Shown here: positions 3,943 through 17,262 of the stretch, one piece after another
Position numbering within the stretch: position 1 is the first letter of the stretch
How the letters are laid out: each line of letters begins with the position of its first letter
From: Podarcis gaigeae
Taxonomy: Eukaryota
NCBI GenBank assembly: GCA_964106915.2
Contig: OZ066925.1
Direction: 5' to 3' (one strand)
Length of the DNA stretch: 64,000 nt
Notes under the pieces: generated by a model
What the model was told of the DNA's origin: nothing
Seen by the model: the letters and a program-made list of their open reading frames with translations, nothing else
Databases searched by the model: none
Program-made: the position numbers and the translations under genes

Positions 3943-4200
3943 ACATAATGAGAGCACCTTACAGGCACCAAGTATGCAATAATAATAATAATAATAATTT
4001 ATTTATACCCCGCCCATCTGGCTGGGCTTCCCCAGCCACTTTGGGTGGCTTCCAGCCAAATATGAAAATACAGTAATACATCAAACATTAAGCTTCCCCA
4101 AACAGGGCTGCCTTCAGATGTCTTCTAAAAGTTTGGTAGTTGTTGTTCTCTTTGACATCTGGTGGGAGGGCGTTCCACAGGGTGAGCGCCACTACCGAGA

Positions 4201-5414
4201 CTAACCTGATCTCATTTTTTGACAGAATTACAAGCCTGGTAGATGAAGGGAACGCAGTGGATGTAGCCTACCTTGATTTCAGCAAGGCATTTGACAAGGT
4301 GCCCCATGATATTCTTGTAAAGAAGCTGGTAAAATGCAGTCTTGACTATGCTACCACTCAGTGGATTTGTAACTGGCTGACTGACCGAACCCAAAGGGTG
4401 CTCATCAATGGTTCCTCTTCATCCTGGAGAAGAGTGACTAGTGGGGTGCCACAGGGTTCTGTCTTGGGCCCAGTCTTATTCAACATCTTTATCAACGACT
4501 TGGATGATGGACTCAAGGGCATCCTGATCAAATTTGCAGATGACACCAAACTGGGAGGGGGGGCTAACACCCCAGAGGACAGGATCACACTTCAAAACGA
4601 CCTTGACAGATTAGAGAACTGGGCCAAAACAAACAAGATGAATTTTAACAGGGAGAAATGTAAAGTATTGCACTTAGGCAAAAAAAATGAGAGGCACAAA
4701 TACAAGATGGGTGACACCTGGCTTGAGAGCAGTACATGTGAAAAGGATCTAGGAGCCTTGGTTGACCACAAACTTGACATGAGCCAACAGTGTGACACGG
4801 CAACTAAAAAAGCCAATGCAATTCTGGGCTGCATCAATAGGAGTATAGCATCTAGATCAAGGGAAGTAATAGTGCCACTGTATTCTGCTCTGGTCAGACC
4901 TCACCTGGAGTACTGTGTCCAGTTCTGGGCACCACAGTTCAAGAAGGACACTGACAAACTGGAACGTGTCCAAAGGAGGGCAATCAAAATGGTCAAAGGC
5001 CTGGAAACGATGCCTTATGAGGAACGGCTAAGGGAGCTGGGCATGTTTAGCCTGGAGAAGAAGAGGTTAAGGGGTGATATGATAGCCATGTTCAAATATA
5101 TAAAAGGATGTCACATAGAGGAGGGAGAAAGGTTGTTTTCTGCTGCTCCAGAGAAGCGGACACGGAGCAATGGATCCAAACTACAAGAAAGAAGATTCCA
5201 CCTAAACATTAGGAAGAACTTCCTGACAGTAAGAGCTGTTCGACAGTGGAATTTGCTGCCAAGGAGTGTGGTGGAGTCTCCTTCTTTGGAGGTCCTTAAG
5301 CAGAGGCTTGACAACCATATGTCAGGAGTGCTCTGATGGTGTTTCCTGCTTGGCAGGGGGTTGGACTCAATGGCCCTTGTGGTCTCTTCCGACTCTATGA
5401 TTCTATGATTCTAT
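4201..5414 (+). mobile_element. Young 5'-truncated CR1 LINE with an uninterrupted RT C-terminal frame (to 5336)
   Basis: [28 protein letters not shown] motifs; tail of ATTCTATG octamers; GAGA duplicated at 4197-4200 and 5415-5418. Confidence 0.95.
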
Positions 5415-6098
5415 GAGAAGGCCCTCTGCCTGGTTCCCTGTAATTTGGCTTCTCGCAGTGAGGGAACCGCCAGAAGGCCCTTGGAGGACTTCCGGGTTAG
5501 CGCCTCCGTCAATGGTGGAGCTCCTCCGATCGGGAGGAACCGGCTCCGTGAAAAACAGGGTCTGACCGCCACGGCGACAGCGGAGACCCTTAGAAATCAC
5601 AGACGGGAGAAGTCTGTGAACCTGGGATTCGGCTGGCACCTTCAGCGCCCACTTACTCGCGGGGAGACCCGGTATCGGGAATCCGGAGCGATGTGGGGTG
5701 AGAGGCGCGGTGCTTTGAATCGACCGCTTATTTCACGGAGCGAAGCCGCATTGCCGCTGTCGGAGAGCGCTGACTTTTTTCATGTGGACAATTGGATTCT
5801 AAACAACAACCCGTGAGTAGAACGGGAAATTGAGCTTTTAAATAATTTAATTTGGCACCGAACGGGAAGGTCTAAACAGGAAGTCCACCTTCCCTTTCTG
5901 TAAATAGACTGAAGCAAAGTAGTTACTAACTAAGGTTTTGGAAAGTCTCGTGTAAAGGATTAAAACTCCACTGATTGAAACCATCAATTCTGACCAAGTG
6001 AACTTGCAGGAGAAGGCGGAAAATTAAAGATTGAAGCATCACGTCTCTGAACCTAGGAACAGTTTGCAAAAAGTCCATCGACGGTAAACAGGGCAAAT

Positions 6099-6170
6099 TT
6101 GACAGCTAGCTTTAACTTGACAGCTAGCTTTAATTTGACAGTTGGCATTAATTTGACAGCTAGCTTTAAA
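6099..6170 (+). repeat. 18-bp tandem repeat x4 (TTGACAGCTAGCTTTAAY) in the 5' UTR of the element
   Basis: Directly visible; third unit is degenerate. Confidence 0.9.
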
Positions 6171-6390
6171 AGAAAGACATTATTTCTATTGTCTGCTTCT
6201 GCACTTAAAAAAAAGAAAAAGGAACTGGGAACTGTTATTAATTTACTTTTGGAATTGTGTTGGAAAGGATTGATACAAATTGAGACTGCTTCCCTCTAGG
6301 GGGAGTTTTGGGACATTGTTACAAGTGTGCAGCTGCGAAATTACTCTGAAGGACTGTGAGAAACTAGTTTTGACATTGAATTTCTTAAGA

Positions 6391-7044
6391 ATGTCGGTAA
6401 AGGAAGAAATAGCGTCTGCTTTGAATAGGACAATTTATCTGCTGGGAAAGCTGCATAAACATATAGATGTCATGGCTACTAATATTGATATCTTGGGAAC
6501 AAAAGTGGGCATCAGCATTGAAGTCTACAAGAACCCGGCACAAGAATCTTTCTTAACTGAACATATTGATGAATTAGAGAAGGAGAAAGTTGCTGTTGTT
6601 GCTGTTGTAGAATATAAAGCAAAATATGGGGGAGCTTTAACCCTAAAGAGGCAAATGGAGGGTTACAACTTGAGGCCTTATATGACTGTAATTAGGAGAA
6701 GCCAGTTTTTGAAGATGGGTGCCTGGCCTGATCTGGAAAAGGAAAAGTGGAGAGATCCCTTTATGCAGGGATCAAATGACTTTTGGAATATGAATTTGAG
6801 CCAGGAGGAGATTGGAGCTTTGGGGGCCTTTGGACTTGGAAGAAATGTGAAACAAGGTTTGGAATACTTTATGGGCCCTAGCTTTATTTATGGAAACCTG
6901 GCAGACTTGTCAAGAAGGAATATAAGCATCGTTGGGTTGGAGCTCCCCCGAGATCTGCTTTTTAGCACCAAAGTTTATCAAGAAGATCGGCAGAAGGGAA
7001 ATGAAGAAGAGTTAAGAGCCTCGGATATCAGATCTCCAGGTTGA
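6391..7044 (+). CDS. 217-aa ORF of the HAL1-like element; probable derived L1 ORF1p
   Basis: Open from ATG 6391. The N-terminus is heptad-like; LADLSRRNISIVGL (~6898-6939) resembles the L1 ORF1p motif LE(N/D)RSRRNNIRIxG(L/I)PE. Confidence 0.55.
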   Translation: MSVKEEIASALNRTIYLLGKLHKHIDVMATNIDILGTKVGISIEVYKNPAQESFLTEHIDELEKEKVAVVAVVEYKAKYGGALTLKRQMEGYNLRPYMTVIRRSQFLKMGAWPDLEKEKWRDPFMQGSNDFWNMNLSQEEIGALGAFGLGRNVKQGLEYFMGPSFIYGNLADLSRRNISIVGLELPRDLLFSTKVYQEDRQKGNEEELRASDIRSPG

Positions 7045-7978
7045 TGGACGCTGGGAGGTTGATGGAACTGAGGGCAGGGGCCGGGACCAGGGAGGGGAGA
7101 CGGAGGAAAGAAATTGGGAATTTAAAGTGTATATAAGGAATTTTTTTTAATAAAAAAAAATTAATGAGAAATGGAAAAATCGTGGAATGAAATTTTTATG
7201 ACCCTAGTTTTAATGAGAAATAAGATTAAATAAAGTAAAAATGGATGATTAATTGGTGAAAGAAGAGAATGTTAAACTACAGTATATTAAGATAAATTAT
7301 TAGGATAAAAACAAGGATGAAGGATTTGCTGGAATAACTAACTGAATCAGAATACAAAGAGGGGAGGTGTGAGGAGGTCAAGGAAATAAGTTAAAGAAGG
7401 AAAGTTATGTAAAGGTTTGATTTGTTCTTTTCTTTCTTTTTTCCCCCTTGATTCTATGCATATTTGTTTTGCTTGTTTTTTGTCTGTTTTCCATTTTTTA
7501 TCTTTTTTTTTGATGTGACTTGTTTTTATGTATTGCTTTCTTTTTTGGTTTAATTGGGTGTTTTTTTGTTGTGATTTATGTAACCTTTAAAATTTTAATA
7601 AAAATCTTTTAAAAAAAACAAAACAGAAGGCCCTTGGCACTGGACCTCAGTGTCTAGGTACAATGATGGGGGTGGAGACGCTCCTTCAGATATACTGGGC
7701 CGAGGCCATTTAGGGCTTTAAAGATCAGCACCAACACTTTGAATTGTGCTTGGAAACGTACTGGGAGCCAGTGTAGGTTTTTCAAGACCGGTGTTATGTG
7801 GTCTGTTATGTGTTATGTGGTTTTATATGGTAGGTGTTATGCAAACAACAATGGGATGAAAATAATGGCGTGGAAGTAGCAACAGTACCTTCCCATATCC
7901 AAACAAAGTAATGCCTGTGTGGTGCCACCCTTACTTCAATCCCTCCTCCAAATTCACCTTTTTGGCGACACCTATGAC

Positions 7979-14780: not shown

Positions 14781-15126
14781 GTACAGAAACTGGCCTGCTG
14801 ACAAAAGTAGCATTTGTATTCATTGCTCTGCCCACAATTTATTTTGGTGCCTCCCACCACTGGCACAGTGGTCCTGAAAGGTTTGCCCAGAAGGGAATGG
14901 GCTAAAAAAGCTTTCCCATCCCTGACATGTGCTAACCCCAGGTGCTAACACTGCCAGACAGGCTTCATGGAGTCTTATAAACCACCCGGAGTTTCGTTCA
15001 GCCTGTGGACCAAACGCTTCCACCAACAAGAACCGTACATGCACACAACCTCAGGAAATTCTTGCATACAATTCTCTGAAATCATGTGAGAAGGGCCACT
15101 GTTTGGAGGAACAGCATCTGTTCTCT

Positions 15127-16188
15127 TTTTTTAATATAATATTTTATTAAGTTTTTTAAAAATAACAACATCCAAAAAAAGAGAAAAAACACACAAAAAA
15201 CACAAAAAATACACAGAAAAAGAAAACAAAAATCCCTCTTTTTAAATTCTTATCTTTGATTCACTTATTTTCCTGACTTCCTCACGCCTCCCTTTTTTGT
15301 ATCCCAATTTGACAATTAATTCAGCAAATTCAAATCCTGCTACTTTACCCTTAAATATTTTACCTCCCAATTTTATAAACTCAAATTTCTCTTGTCACCA
15401 GAACCCCTTCATATTATTTCAATGTCATCAACATTCATACATTTTACAATGCTTCTGTAAATAAATTTTAAATTTCATCCAATCTTCTTCCACCAACTAT
15501 TCTCCCTGATCTCGGATTCTGCCAGTCATTTCAGCCATTTCCATATAGTCGATTACTTGCGTCTGCCATTCTTCCAAAGTGGGTAGATCTTGTGTTTTCC
15601 AATGCTTTGCAATGAGTATTCTTGCTGCTGCTGTAGCATACATAAAGAAAGTTTTATGGCACCAATTGTCCGACTATGCCCAGGAGAAAAGCCTCTGGTT
15701 TCTTCACGAAAGTGTATTTAAATACCTTTTTCATTTCATTGTAAATCATCTCCCAGGCCTTAATCCTCGGGCACGTCCACCAAAGGTGAAAGAATGTACC
15801 TTCAATTTCTTTACATTTCCAACATTTATTATCGGGCAAATGATAGATTTTTGCAAGCTTGACTGGGGTCATGTACCACCTATATATCATTTTCATAATA
15901 TTCTCTCTTAGGGCATTACATGCTGTAAATTTGATCCCGGTGGTCCACAACTGCTCCCAGTCAGCAAACATAATATTGTGTCCTATATCCTGTGCCCATT
16001 TAATCATAGCAGATTTTACCGTCTCTTCCTCAGTACTCCATTTCAACAGCAGGTTATACATTCTTGATAGTATCTTAGCACTGGGTTCTAACAATTCTGT
16101 TTCCAACTTTGATTTTTCCACCTGGAAACCGATTTTTTTGTCTTGATTGTAAACCTCTCTTATTTGAAAGTAATGTAACCAGTCTCGC
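15127..16188 (-). mobile_element. 5'-truncated L1 (ORF2 C-terminal zinc-knuckle region plus 3' UTR), inserted into the head of a tRNA SINE
   Basis: CWKCKEIEGTFFHLWWTC motif; 20-bp TSD AGGAACAG(C/A)ATCTGTTCTCT (15107, 16189). Confidence 0.92.
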
Positions 16189-17262
16189 AGGAACAGAATC
16201 TGTTCTCTGTGCAAAAGATGCTATGCTCAATCTTTGGCACCTCCGGTTTTTAAAAAGACCCTGACCTGAGAGCTGGTGCCAATCAATAATGGATTAGATT
16301 GATAAATAGTCTGAGGCAGCTTCATTTGTTAGACGATAGACAGCCTGTGAATGATGTAATATACTGGATAAGGGGGCATGACTTCTAAGCGAACTTGACC
16401 ATCAACAGATGTGCTTTTGGAAATTACCTTGATCTAATCTTAATTTGTTTATCTACAAATTATAATACTTAACAACATGACTACAAGGACACTAGAAACA
16501 AGGACTGTAAATTGCTTCCAGATGATCTGCTTATTGAGCATTTGTTTGCACAAAGTTTGCAGGGAGGTTGTGCAACATCCACTGCTGTCAAACAACTGTC
16601 GTCCCAGTGCTTTTCATTGCCTTTCCCTATCACTCTACTCACTGCACAAAATCCCACTGGTGTGGGCTGAGAACAGGGGATTTTGCACAAGAATGCAAAA
16701 TCCACTTTAATTACGCAACTGGAATTTACTAGTATACAACTGAATATCATCCACAAAATAGCAACAGTCCAGAAGTGGCCTATGTTGCATACCACAATCC
16801 CTGACTTAAAACGCATTATATAAGGGCCCCATTGAGCTCAGTGGGATTTACTTCAGCACCCTGTGTTTAGAATAAAGACTACAATCCGATACCTACCTGG
16901 CAATGAGCTTGGCTGGTGTATCCAATCTCACCTGCTTGATGGGGCAGAAAGCCAGATCTGCTTCCCCTTCTTTGACATCTGGAGTCCCAAGAAGAAGACC
17001 TCCCCCTCCATCCCTTGGTGCCTGTTTACCAGCCCACTACCTCCTCCTTCCTTTCTTCTTGCATTTGGTGCTGCCAAACCATGCCAGACAGAGTCAAGAG
17101 GTCCATGGCATCCCTGCATATATGACATCAGAGACAGGGGCAGGCAGCTGTAGTTTAAGAAAAAGACCTGGCAGACCAAACAAGGAGATCTGGTGGGTCA
17201 CGTTTGGCATACATCCAGGTCAATCCAAGGAATCTCCATTGAAATGTCTTCTCAAGTAGCAG

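Follow-up and report, generated by a model that had tools for sequence, protein, structure and literature searches.

What is an insert that has both ends of an L1 retrotransposon, almost nothing of the body of one, and a single intact gene? The question is raised by a stretch of 64,000 nucleotides (nt) from the lizard Podarcis gaigeae (NCBI GenBank assembly GCA_964106915.2, contig OZ066925.1), hereafter called the window, in which 2139 bp at positions 5485-7623 form such an insert around an open reading frame (ORF) of 217 amino acids (aa). A first-pass annotation of the window had regarded it as a complete L1 parasite of the half-L1 (HAL1) kind, with a remodelled ORF1-like gene, recently active and using an L1 lineage that is present in the same window. 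We read the insert, with a probability of roughly three in four, as a full-length copy of a non-autonomous, L1-derived retroposon family of Podarcis (lacertid) lizards that is mobilised by autonomous L1 in trans. The features on which this reading is based are the following.

5471-5484, plus strand: left target-site duplication (TSD), CAGAAGGCCCTTGG, the same as 7624-7637
7624-7637, plus strand: right TSD, the same as 5471-5484
5485-7623, plus strand: putative complete non-autonomous L1-derived retroposon, 2139 bp, bounded by the TSDs and colinear over its full length with the Podarcis lilfordi copy L008:9076-11169 and with copy L005
5487-5518, plus strand: L1-type 5' terminus (GACTTCCGG, 17 nt, ATGGTGG), fitting the 5' consensus of Anolis clade-1 L1 (PMC5381506)
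5485-5785, plus strand: CpG-rich head, presumed internal promoter (first 300 nt: GC 0.60-0.61, observed/expected CpG 0.97-1.25)
5485-6390, plus strand: leader, or 5' untranslated region (UTR), 906 nt
6096-6169, plus strand: tandem repeat of 18 nt within the leader, AATTTGACAGCTAGCTTT, 4.1 copies
6391-7044, plus strand: intact ORF of the family protein, 217 aa; relatives of 196-215 aa align along its full length, all ending RASD.R.PG and a stop
6397-6525, plus strand: predicted parallel coiled-coil helix, codons 3-45 (AlphaFold2 helix; contacts on a 3-4 spacing in a three-copy model)
7045-7135, plus strand: G-rich segment, now non-coding, derived from the ORF2 terminus (last ~17 codons) and the beginning of the 3' UTR of L1
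7324-7435, plus strand: purine-rich 3' UTR motif common to the L1 lineage
7400-7590, plus strand: T-rich 3' UTR tract, 63% T, matching the T-rich tract of the L1 fragment in the window
7597-7623, plus strand: AATAAA (7597-7602) and a short A-rich tail (21 nt)

Boundaries and 5' End of the Insert

The two copies of the TSD agree at 14 of 14 positions, so the perfect 14-bp duplication and the 2139-bp length given by the first-pass annotation both stand, as do all of its other coordinates; the parts that it named (CpG-rich head, leader of ~900 nt, 217-aa ORF, G-rich tract, AATAAA, and A-rich tail) are all present. An empty-site search inside the window for a second copy of the flanking repeat spanning the empty junction found none. 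The insert begins aGGACTTCCGGGTT...AATGGTGG, with ATGGTGG placed 17 nt after aGGACTTCCGGGTT, and copy L008 from P. lilfordi starts with GACTTCCGGGG...AATGGCGG. In Anolis, the 5' terminus of clade-1 L1 was reported as GACTTCCGGTGN8ATGGCG (Boissinot & Sookdeo 2016, PMC5381506); the present element differs from it by a longer spacer and by one CpG-to-TpG change.

Past the first 300 nt, the remainder of the element is AT-rich and CpG-poor (observed/expected CpG 0-0.9). The CpG-rich head is the most conserved part of the family, with 75.5% identity to L008 across 339 nt, and when the three longest copies are aligned over their full length the 5' 470 nt are conserved more than the ORF. The 18-nt array appears to have grown within the subfamily of the window copy, because L005 and L008 carry fewer units. 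The start codon of the ORF lies at 6391, with A at position -3. A palindromic box, CCCTCTAG(A)GGGG, is conserved 5' of the start codon in all subfamilies (6292-6303 in the window); it stands ~20 nt from the ATG in most members (just upstream in L002-L005) and ~90 nt from it in the subfamily of the window copy and L001.

The absence of endonuclease and reverse transcriptase, also claimed at first reading, is borne out: the six ORFs of at least 50 aa in the insert gave no significant Pfam match and no endonuclease or reverse transcriptase domain, and ORF2 cannot fit because the element, at 2.1 kb, is too short.

The 3' Module and Its L1 Source

The 3' 580 nt of the element correspond to the end of L1 ORF2 and an L1 3' UTR, and a source lineage for them is represented in the same window.

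15127-16188, minus strand: 5'-truncated copy of the presumed partner L1 lineage, 1062 bp, comprising the ORF2 end and 3' UTR, with its own 20-bp TSD

The TSD of this fragment, AGAGAACAGAT(T/G)CTGTTCCT, lies at 16189-16208 and 15107-15126. The fragment carries the Cys-rich motif of the ORF2 C-terminus (CWKC...HLWWTC), and its ORF has no Pfam match; UniRef names its homologues reverse transcriptase zinc-binding domain proteins. The first-pass annotation had aligned the two 3' UTRs by eye, and the likeness is confirmed by blastn, which pairs 7324-7435 with 15329-15219 on the minus strand (72% across 113 nt, E 8e-10) and finds more T-rich matches beyond. In local alignment, the 3' UTR of the element scores 76 against the fragment, compared with 25.9 +/- 3.4 for shuffled sequences. 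The 19-nt core of the purine-rich motif, GGGAGGYGTGAGGARGTCA, has exactly two sites in the 64-kb window, one in the element and one in the L1 fragment, where 0.01 would be expected. RNAalifold predicted no structure for the shared 3' UTR motif.

Directly past the stop codon, the window copy has a G-rich tract proper (7045-7110) followed by A-rich sequence, and this post-stop segment alone matches the L1 fragment weakly (score 33 vs 23.8 +/- 3.1 for shuffles). The match is stronger in other members of the family. In L011, L006, and L001, homology to the last ~17 codons of ORF2 (...DYMEMAEMTGRIRDQGE, then the stop) and to the first ~65 nt of the 3' UTR starts at the ORF stop: the post-stop sequence of L011 scores 100 against 15553-15435 of the window (shuffles, 26.4 +/- 2.7), and blastn gives E 5e-6 for L006 and E 4e-7 for L001. 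The segment in the window copy has drifted to a G-rich composition, yet it is colinear with those of the other members.

Two other L1 lineages of P. lilfordi (L009:10300-10900 and L010:10700-11100) have G-rich, poly-purine 3' UTRs without the T-rich tract, which by eye seem unrelated to that of the element; thus, multiple L1 lineages with different tails appear to coexist in Podarcis. Judged by these alignments, the 3' module is the ORF2 end and 3' UTR of one particular L1 lineage, the one seen in this window, as had been proposed at first reading, and mobilisation by that lineage would be the natural corollary.

A Family with One Junction

An exhaustive phmmer search with the ORF protein against 1.84 billion representative proteins gave eight matches, four of them end to end (212 aa at 63% identity, 215 aa at 41%, 201 aa at 38%, and 201 aa at 34%), and two more, a 201-aa protein of Podarcis lilfordi named "hypothetical predicted protein" and one of 196 aa, came from a profile search. 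Overall, the relatives are 196-215 aa long, share 33-63% identity, and fall into at least four subfamilies; all complete members end in ...KG..RD.RASD.R.PG followed by the stop. A word-index protein search with the window ORF alone returned no matches, and an exact-protein look-up found no record of it.

These searches bear on the possibility that the insert derives from a host mRNA as a processed retrocopy. The TSD, the poly(A) signal, the A tail, the CpG-rich 5' end, and the one intact ORF would all speak for this. We give this explanation almost no credence. The 5' terminus agrees with the L1 consensus, L1 also accounts for the 3' 580 nt, the exhaustive and profile searches for a host-gene homologue gave only family members inside such elements, and the only named relative, the "hypothetical predicted protein", itself lies within a TSD-flanked 2.1-kb copy.

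One junction is common to all members at the DNA level: immediately past the ORF stop come the final ~17 codons of L1 ORF2, and then the 3' UTR of one L1 lineage. L008, on P. lilfordi chromosome OX395127.1, is a complete 2.09-kb copy with the purine-rich motif, T-rich tract, AATAAA, and A tail; its TSD of 19 nt with one mismatch, AAAAGTATGACTCA(C/A)GCGA, marks a site unrelated to that of the window copy. L005, from another subfamily, is nearly complete (CpG-rich head, 810-nt leader, ORF, and 400 nt of tail), L003 and L006, like the window copy, have the purine-rich L1 motif ~300 nt past the stop, and L001, which is 5'-truncated, lies in a further, different genomic context. The related contigs cannot all be orthologous copies of one locus, because their flanks and TSDs differ. 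Five Logan contigs from five runs (L011-L015) are at least 99.4% identical to one another and are without the equivalent of window positions 6700-6908, a frame-breaking loss of 209 nt; they may stem from a single locus sampled in five individuals, or form a shorter subfamily without the ORF.

Could the insert instead be a one-off, an L1 that was spliced or internally deleted and dead on arrival, or that lost its middle after insertion? Such copies, the spliced integrated retrotransposed elements (SpIREs), are known in humans (PMC5860796), and no near-identical second copy of the exact subfamily in the window was found. We nevertheless consider this origin very improbable, since the junction and the architecture recur at 33-63% protein identity, next to a different TSD in another species, and across the contigs of several runs. 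A single-copy deletion had been named at first reading as the outcome that would overturn the proposal, and it is contradicted because divergent members (the same junction is seen at 33-43% protein identity) and the second complete copy in P. lilfordi share one structure. Propagation as a unit is shown by the window copy with its 14-bp TSD and by L008 with its 19-nt TSD, at unrelated sites and each with an A tail. On the strength of these comparisons, the element belongs to a real, old, and diversified family that transposes as a unit.

Maintenance of the ORF

The ORF of the window copy contains no in-frame stop, compared with 18 and 15 stops in the other two frames, and the same holds for six members of at least four subfamilies (no in-frame stops vs 12-18 per other frame). 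If substitutions alone are considered, the chance of the ORF staying open is ~5e-4 at 22% divergence and at most 2.5e-4 at 39% divergence or more. Selection on the protein was estimated pairwise in ten pairs from the ratio of nonsynonymous to synonymous substitution rates (dN/dS; Nei-Gojobori method, NG86, with bootstrap intervals). The ratio is 0.46 [0.32-0.66] for the window copy against P0001 and 0.35 [0.20-0.64] for P0012 against P0006, it ranges from 0.49 to 0.76 between subfamilies, and it reaches 0.88 [0.58-1.29] for P0004 against P0005. Since the copies also hold neutral changes acquired after insertion, the ratios in the active lineages can be at most this high.

Across subfamilies, the DNA hardly varies, third codon positions included, over the final ~30 codons of the ORF (...DRQKG.ERDLRASD.RSPG) and around the stop. 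This stretch, at 7016-7044 in the window and at the equivalent places in L001-L008, is a possible RNA element at the point where the deletion lies.

The 217-Amino-Acid Protein

Modelling with AlphaFold2 gave a mean predicted local distance difference test (pLDDT) score of 36 with 5 sequences and 41 with 13; with 13 sequences, a helix is predicted at residues 3-46 (pLDDT 60-77). When three copies of residues 1-90 were modelled together, they formed a parallel, in-register bundle that scored 0.48, compared with 0.00 for the best control. Its contacts fall at residues 3, 7, 10, 14, 17, 21, 24/25, 28, 31/32, 35, and 38/39; the three-copy runs share at least 83% of contacts, and the pLDDT of the partners is at least 57. 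That score was reached by 21 of 30 proteins whose solved structures are pairs of one chain and by none of 23 solved as single chains (by 17 of 29 and none of 30 among eukaryotes), a calibration that is based on two copies, and three were modelled here. As a prediction only, the model supports self-association of the protein through its N-terminus, although a coiled coil is a feature not specific to ORF1p and the number of chains in the oligomer is not fixed by the model. The N-terminal heptad pattern is retained.

An SRRN motif (RRNISIVGLELP) resembles the first strand of the RNA recognition motif (RRM) of ORF1p, and it is poorly conserved among subfamilies (RRN..G.E). From the position of the ORF in the element, the predicted coiled coil, and the weak RRN..G.E motif, we infer that the ORF may descend from ORF1.

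A search of Rfam gave no meaningful match. Matches by ESM Atlas features, to unrelated glycosyltransferase and viral clusters, had chance-level scores and were discarded as noise. When the ORF and the other frames were compared by tblastn with the L1 fragment of the window, the ORF proper showed no similarity to the last ~240 residues of ORF2; a possible in-frame match of ...EDRQKG... to ...EEWQTQ... of ORF2 comes from visual inspection alone, and we make no claim of it.

Weighing the Evidence

A number of findings weigh against the reading proposed here. Some concern insertion and activity. The target site of the window copy (..ACCGC|CAGAAGG.., 5466-5490) differs from the classical L1 endonuclease site, TT|AAAA; that of L008 is classical (TATT|AAAAGT, L008:9052-9080). 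A search with the ORF2 fragment of the window for a full-length L1 of the partner lineage gave two P. lilfordi loci, both of them 5'-truncated and of other lineages. The closest relative of the window copy, P0001, is 78% identical to it in ORF DNA, so recent amplification of this subfamily lacks support. The suggestion of recent activity in the first-pass annotation thus stands in part: a TSD without mismatches, a CpG island that has not decayed, and an unbroken ORF suggest it, and no near-identical second copy was found.

Other findings concern the protein. Selection on it is weak, with pairwise dN/dS of 0.35-0.88 and bootstrap intervals that span 1 in three of the ten pairs; over codons ~100-220 conservation of the third positions equals that of the other two, so that RNA may be the target of part of the constraint. 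Because every relative was recovered via its ORF, there is an ascertainment bias, and the ORF is broken in at least two copies (L006 and L011-L015). None of nine family members matches Pfam at E up to 10, and P0012 and P0013 have no match at E up to 0.1. No relative, L1 ORF1p included, was found in the PDB by sequence or profile search. Residues 44-217 have pLDDT below 50, with no strands predicted, and neither sequence nor predicted fold links the ORF to ORF1p. The ORF1-like gene proposed at first reading accordingly found no backing in Transposase_22, in the PDB sequence searches, or in the AlphaFold2 models.

Two rival explanations draw on these findings. In one, the family is real and the ORF is a passenger, the elements having spread as essentially non-coding RNAs made of an L1 5' UTR and 3' UTR; constraint on RNA, a need for translation regardless of the peptide, or ascertainment would then account for the open frame and for dN/dS values below 1. 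The equal conservation of third positions in the C-terminal half, the near-invariant DNA of the last ~30 codons and the post-stop segment, the pairs with dN/dS of 0.73-0.88 and intervals spanning 1, the ORF-broken copies (one of them, with the 209-nt deletion, in five runs), and the lack of a confident fold for most of the protein all fit this explanation. It is harder to reconcile with the similar length, start, and stop kept by six members from at least four subfamilies at protein identities as low as 33%, with their in-frame stop count of zero against 12-18 in other frames (chance retention at most 5e-4 per lineage), with the two least saturated pairs, whose dN/dS of 0.35-0.46 has intervals that exclude 1, and with the preserved N-terminal heptad pattern. 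On balance, we find a pure passenger improbable. Disruption of the ORF in most copies, or dN/dS near 1, would have argued against a maintained gene in the terms of the first-pass annotation; on this point, the frame is open in six members and two pairs give 0.35-0.46, while three of ten intervals span 1 and some copies are broken.

In the other explanation, all of ORF1 and ORF2 was deleted and the ORF is not from ORF1 at all, being an upstream ORF of a long L1 5' UTR or a captured or de novo sequence. No likeness to Transposase_22, or to any protein other than family members, is detectable, the subfamilies preserve the RRN..G.E motif poorly, and the 5' UTRs of lizard clade 1, with a mean of 1.3 kb (PMC5381506), come near the 1.56 kb of the leader plus ORF of the element. 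Set against this are the location of the ORF at the start of ORF1 and its opening with a predicted parallel coiled coil, as in ORF1p. It should also be mentioned that the N-terminal and coiled-coil part of ORF1p is reported to be too variable to be aligned across L1 families in general, although it is conserved within lizard clade 1 (PMC5381506), and the absence of likeness to a distant ORF1p is therefore expected. We consider a non-ORF1 origin unlikely, yet a possibility to be taken seriously.

Proposed Mechanism

For a non-autonomous family mobilised in trans, target-primed reverse transcription, an internal promoter in the 5' UTR, and trans-mobilisation of HAL1, short interspersed elements, and mRNAs are established parts of L1 biology. 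The founder would have been an L1 that lost nearly everything from the start of ORF1 to the last ~17 codons of ORF2. It would have retained a clade-1-type 5' end with a CpG-rich 5' UTR, the presumed internal RNA polymerase II promoter; an ORF of 200-217 aa located where ORF1 begins, whose sole recognisable feature is the predicted N-terminal parallel coiled coil; and the extreme 3' end of ORF2 together with the 3' UTR of one L1 lineage (purine-rich motif, T-rich tract, AATAAA, and A tail). Transcription would begin at the GACTTCCGG end, and the RNA would be polyadenylated past AATAAA. An autonomous L1, presumably of the lineage with the shared 3' UTR, would supply ORF2p, with its endonuclease and reverse transcriptase, in trans, and insertion would proceed by target-primed reverse transcription, which would explain the TSD and the A tail.

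What the protein would do in such a cycle can be proposed only tentatively. It is conceivable that the coiled-coil protein acts in cis, assembling with itself at or close to its own RNA, or via the coiled coil with L1 ORF1p, and thereby bringing the parasite RNA to the L1 machinery. In a more specific and rather doubtful version, the element would belong to an old squamate lineage of L1 parasites whose sole gene is a stump of ORF1p, a trimerising coiled coil without an RNA-binding domain that stops where the ORF2 tail is joined on, selected for co-assembly with ORF1p or for docking the RNA at the site of L1 translation. If that were true, the cis-preference of L1 would be hijacked via protein-protein contacts, not via RNA mimicry.

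Comparison with Known Elements

The HAL1 elements of mammals are non-autonomous L1 derivatives that encode only ORF1p and arose several times (PMC5753468, citing Smit 1999 and Bao & Jurka 2010). With HAL1 as it is described there, the present element shares L1-derived 5' and 3' ends, a single 5' ORF, the absence of ORF2, and transposition as a unit, here probably through L1 acting in trans. It differs in that its ORF has about two-thirds of the length of ORF1 and is without a detectable RRM or C-terminal domain (CTD), the Pfam Transposase_22 search being negative, and in that the last ~17 codons of ORF2 are kept as non-coding sequence. Since the host is a squamate, an origin independent of HAL1 would follow. 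Of a recognisable ORF1p (coiled coil, RRM, and CTD, as in Transposase_22), the coiled coil alone is supported; we therefore class the element as a HAL1-like variant and not as HAL1. The HAL1-like label of the first-pass annotation thus holds for the L1 ends, the lack of ORF2, and the unit transposition, and fails for the encoding of ORF1p.

In Anolis, clade-1 5' UTRs are ~1.3 kb long, carry CpG islands, and are conserved among families, and lizard L1 3' UTRs contain T-rich or C-rich repeats with AATAAA and an A tail at the end (PMC5381506). The element has in common with autonomous lizard L1 the GACTTCCGG...ATGGCG-type 5' end, the long CpG-rich 5' UTR, the T-rich 3' UTR, AATAAA, and the A tail, as well as the presence of many divergent lineages side by side. 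Unlike autonomous L1, it is 2.1 kb and not 5.4-6.4 kb long, has no ORF2 with endonuclease and reverse transcriptase, and has an ORF without the RRM and CTD reported to be conserved in all vertebrate L1 ORF1.

As far as is known, SpIREs are sporadic and largely dead-end copies. They resemble the present element (PMC5860796) in being L1 RNAs that were retrotransposed despite missing an internal segment, and they offer a possible route to the founder; they differ in that the deleted form would here be a self-perpetuating lineage, split into subfamilies at 33-63% protein identity. A further likeness is to HeT-A of Drosophila, a non-long-terminal-repeat element that has only a Gag-like first ORF and obtains its reverse transcriptase in trans. 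HeT-A, unlike the element, belongs to the Jockey clade, inserts at telomeres, and has a Gag that keeps its nucleic-acid-binding domains.

Significance

To our knowledge, descriptions of half-L1 elements have up to now treated them as mammalian. A full-text literature search found no such element described in lizards; Repbase and Dfam lay outside its scope, so the word "undescribed" is provisional. A lacertid family of this kind would show that wherever L1 is active, parasites of it that encode a protein evolve again and again, and it would add a partner to the L1 ecosystem of squamates with its many lineages. The RNA-binding RRM and CTD are thought to be essential for the function of ORF1p. 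The unusual point is that here a protein is kept open across subfamilies that share one-third of their residues, yet without a detectable RRM and CTD. If the protein is needed, the family would be a natural experiment on the coiled coil of ORF1p alone and on the subversion of cis-preference; if it is not needed, it would be a good case of constraint at the RNA level mimicking a gene. The purine-rich 3' UTR motif, shared with one L1 lineage only, bears on whether lizard L1 recognises its own 3' end.

The Neighbourhood of the Insertion

Just upstream of the insert, positions 4140-5416 (plus strand) hold the 3' part of a CR1/L2-type LINE with a 398-aa ORF (RVT_1, E 1e-24). Its tail, (TCTATGAT)n, lies at 5394-5416, ~70 bp 5' of the insertion, and the 5'-truncated family copy L001 directly follows a tail of the same kind.

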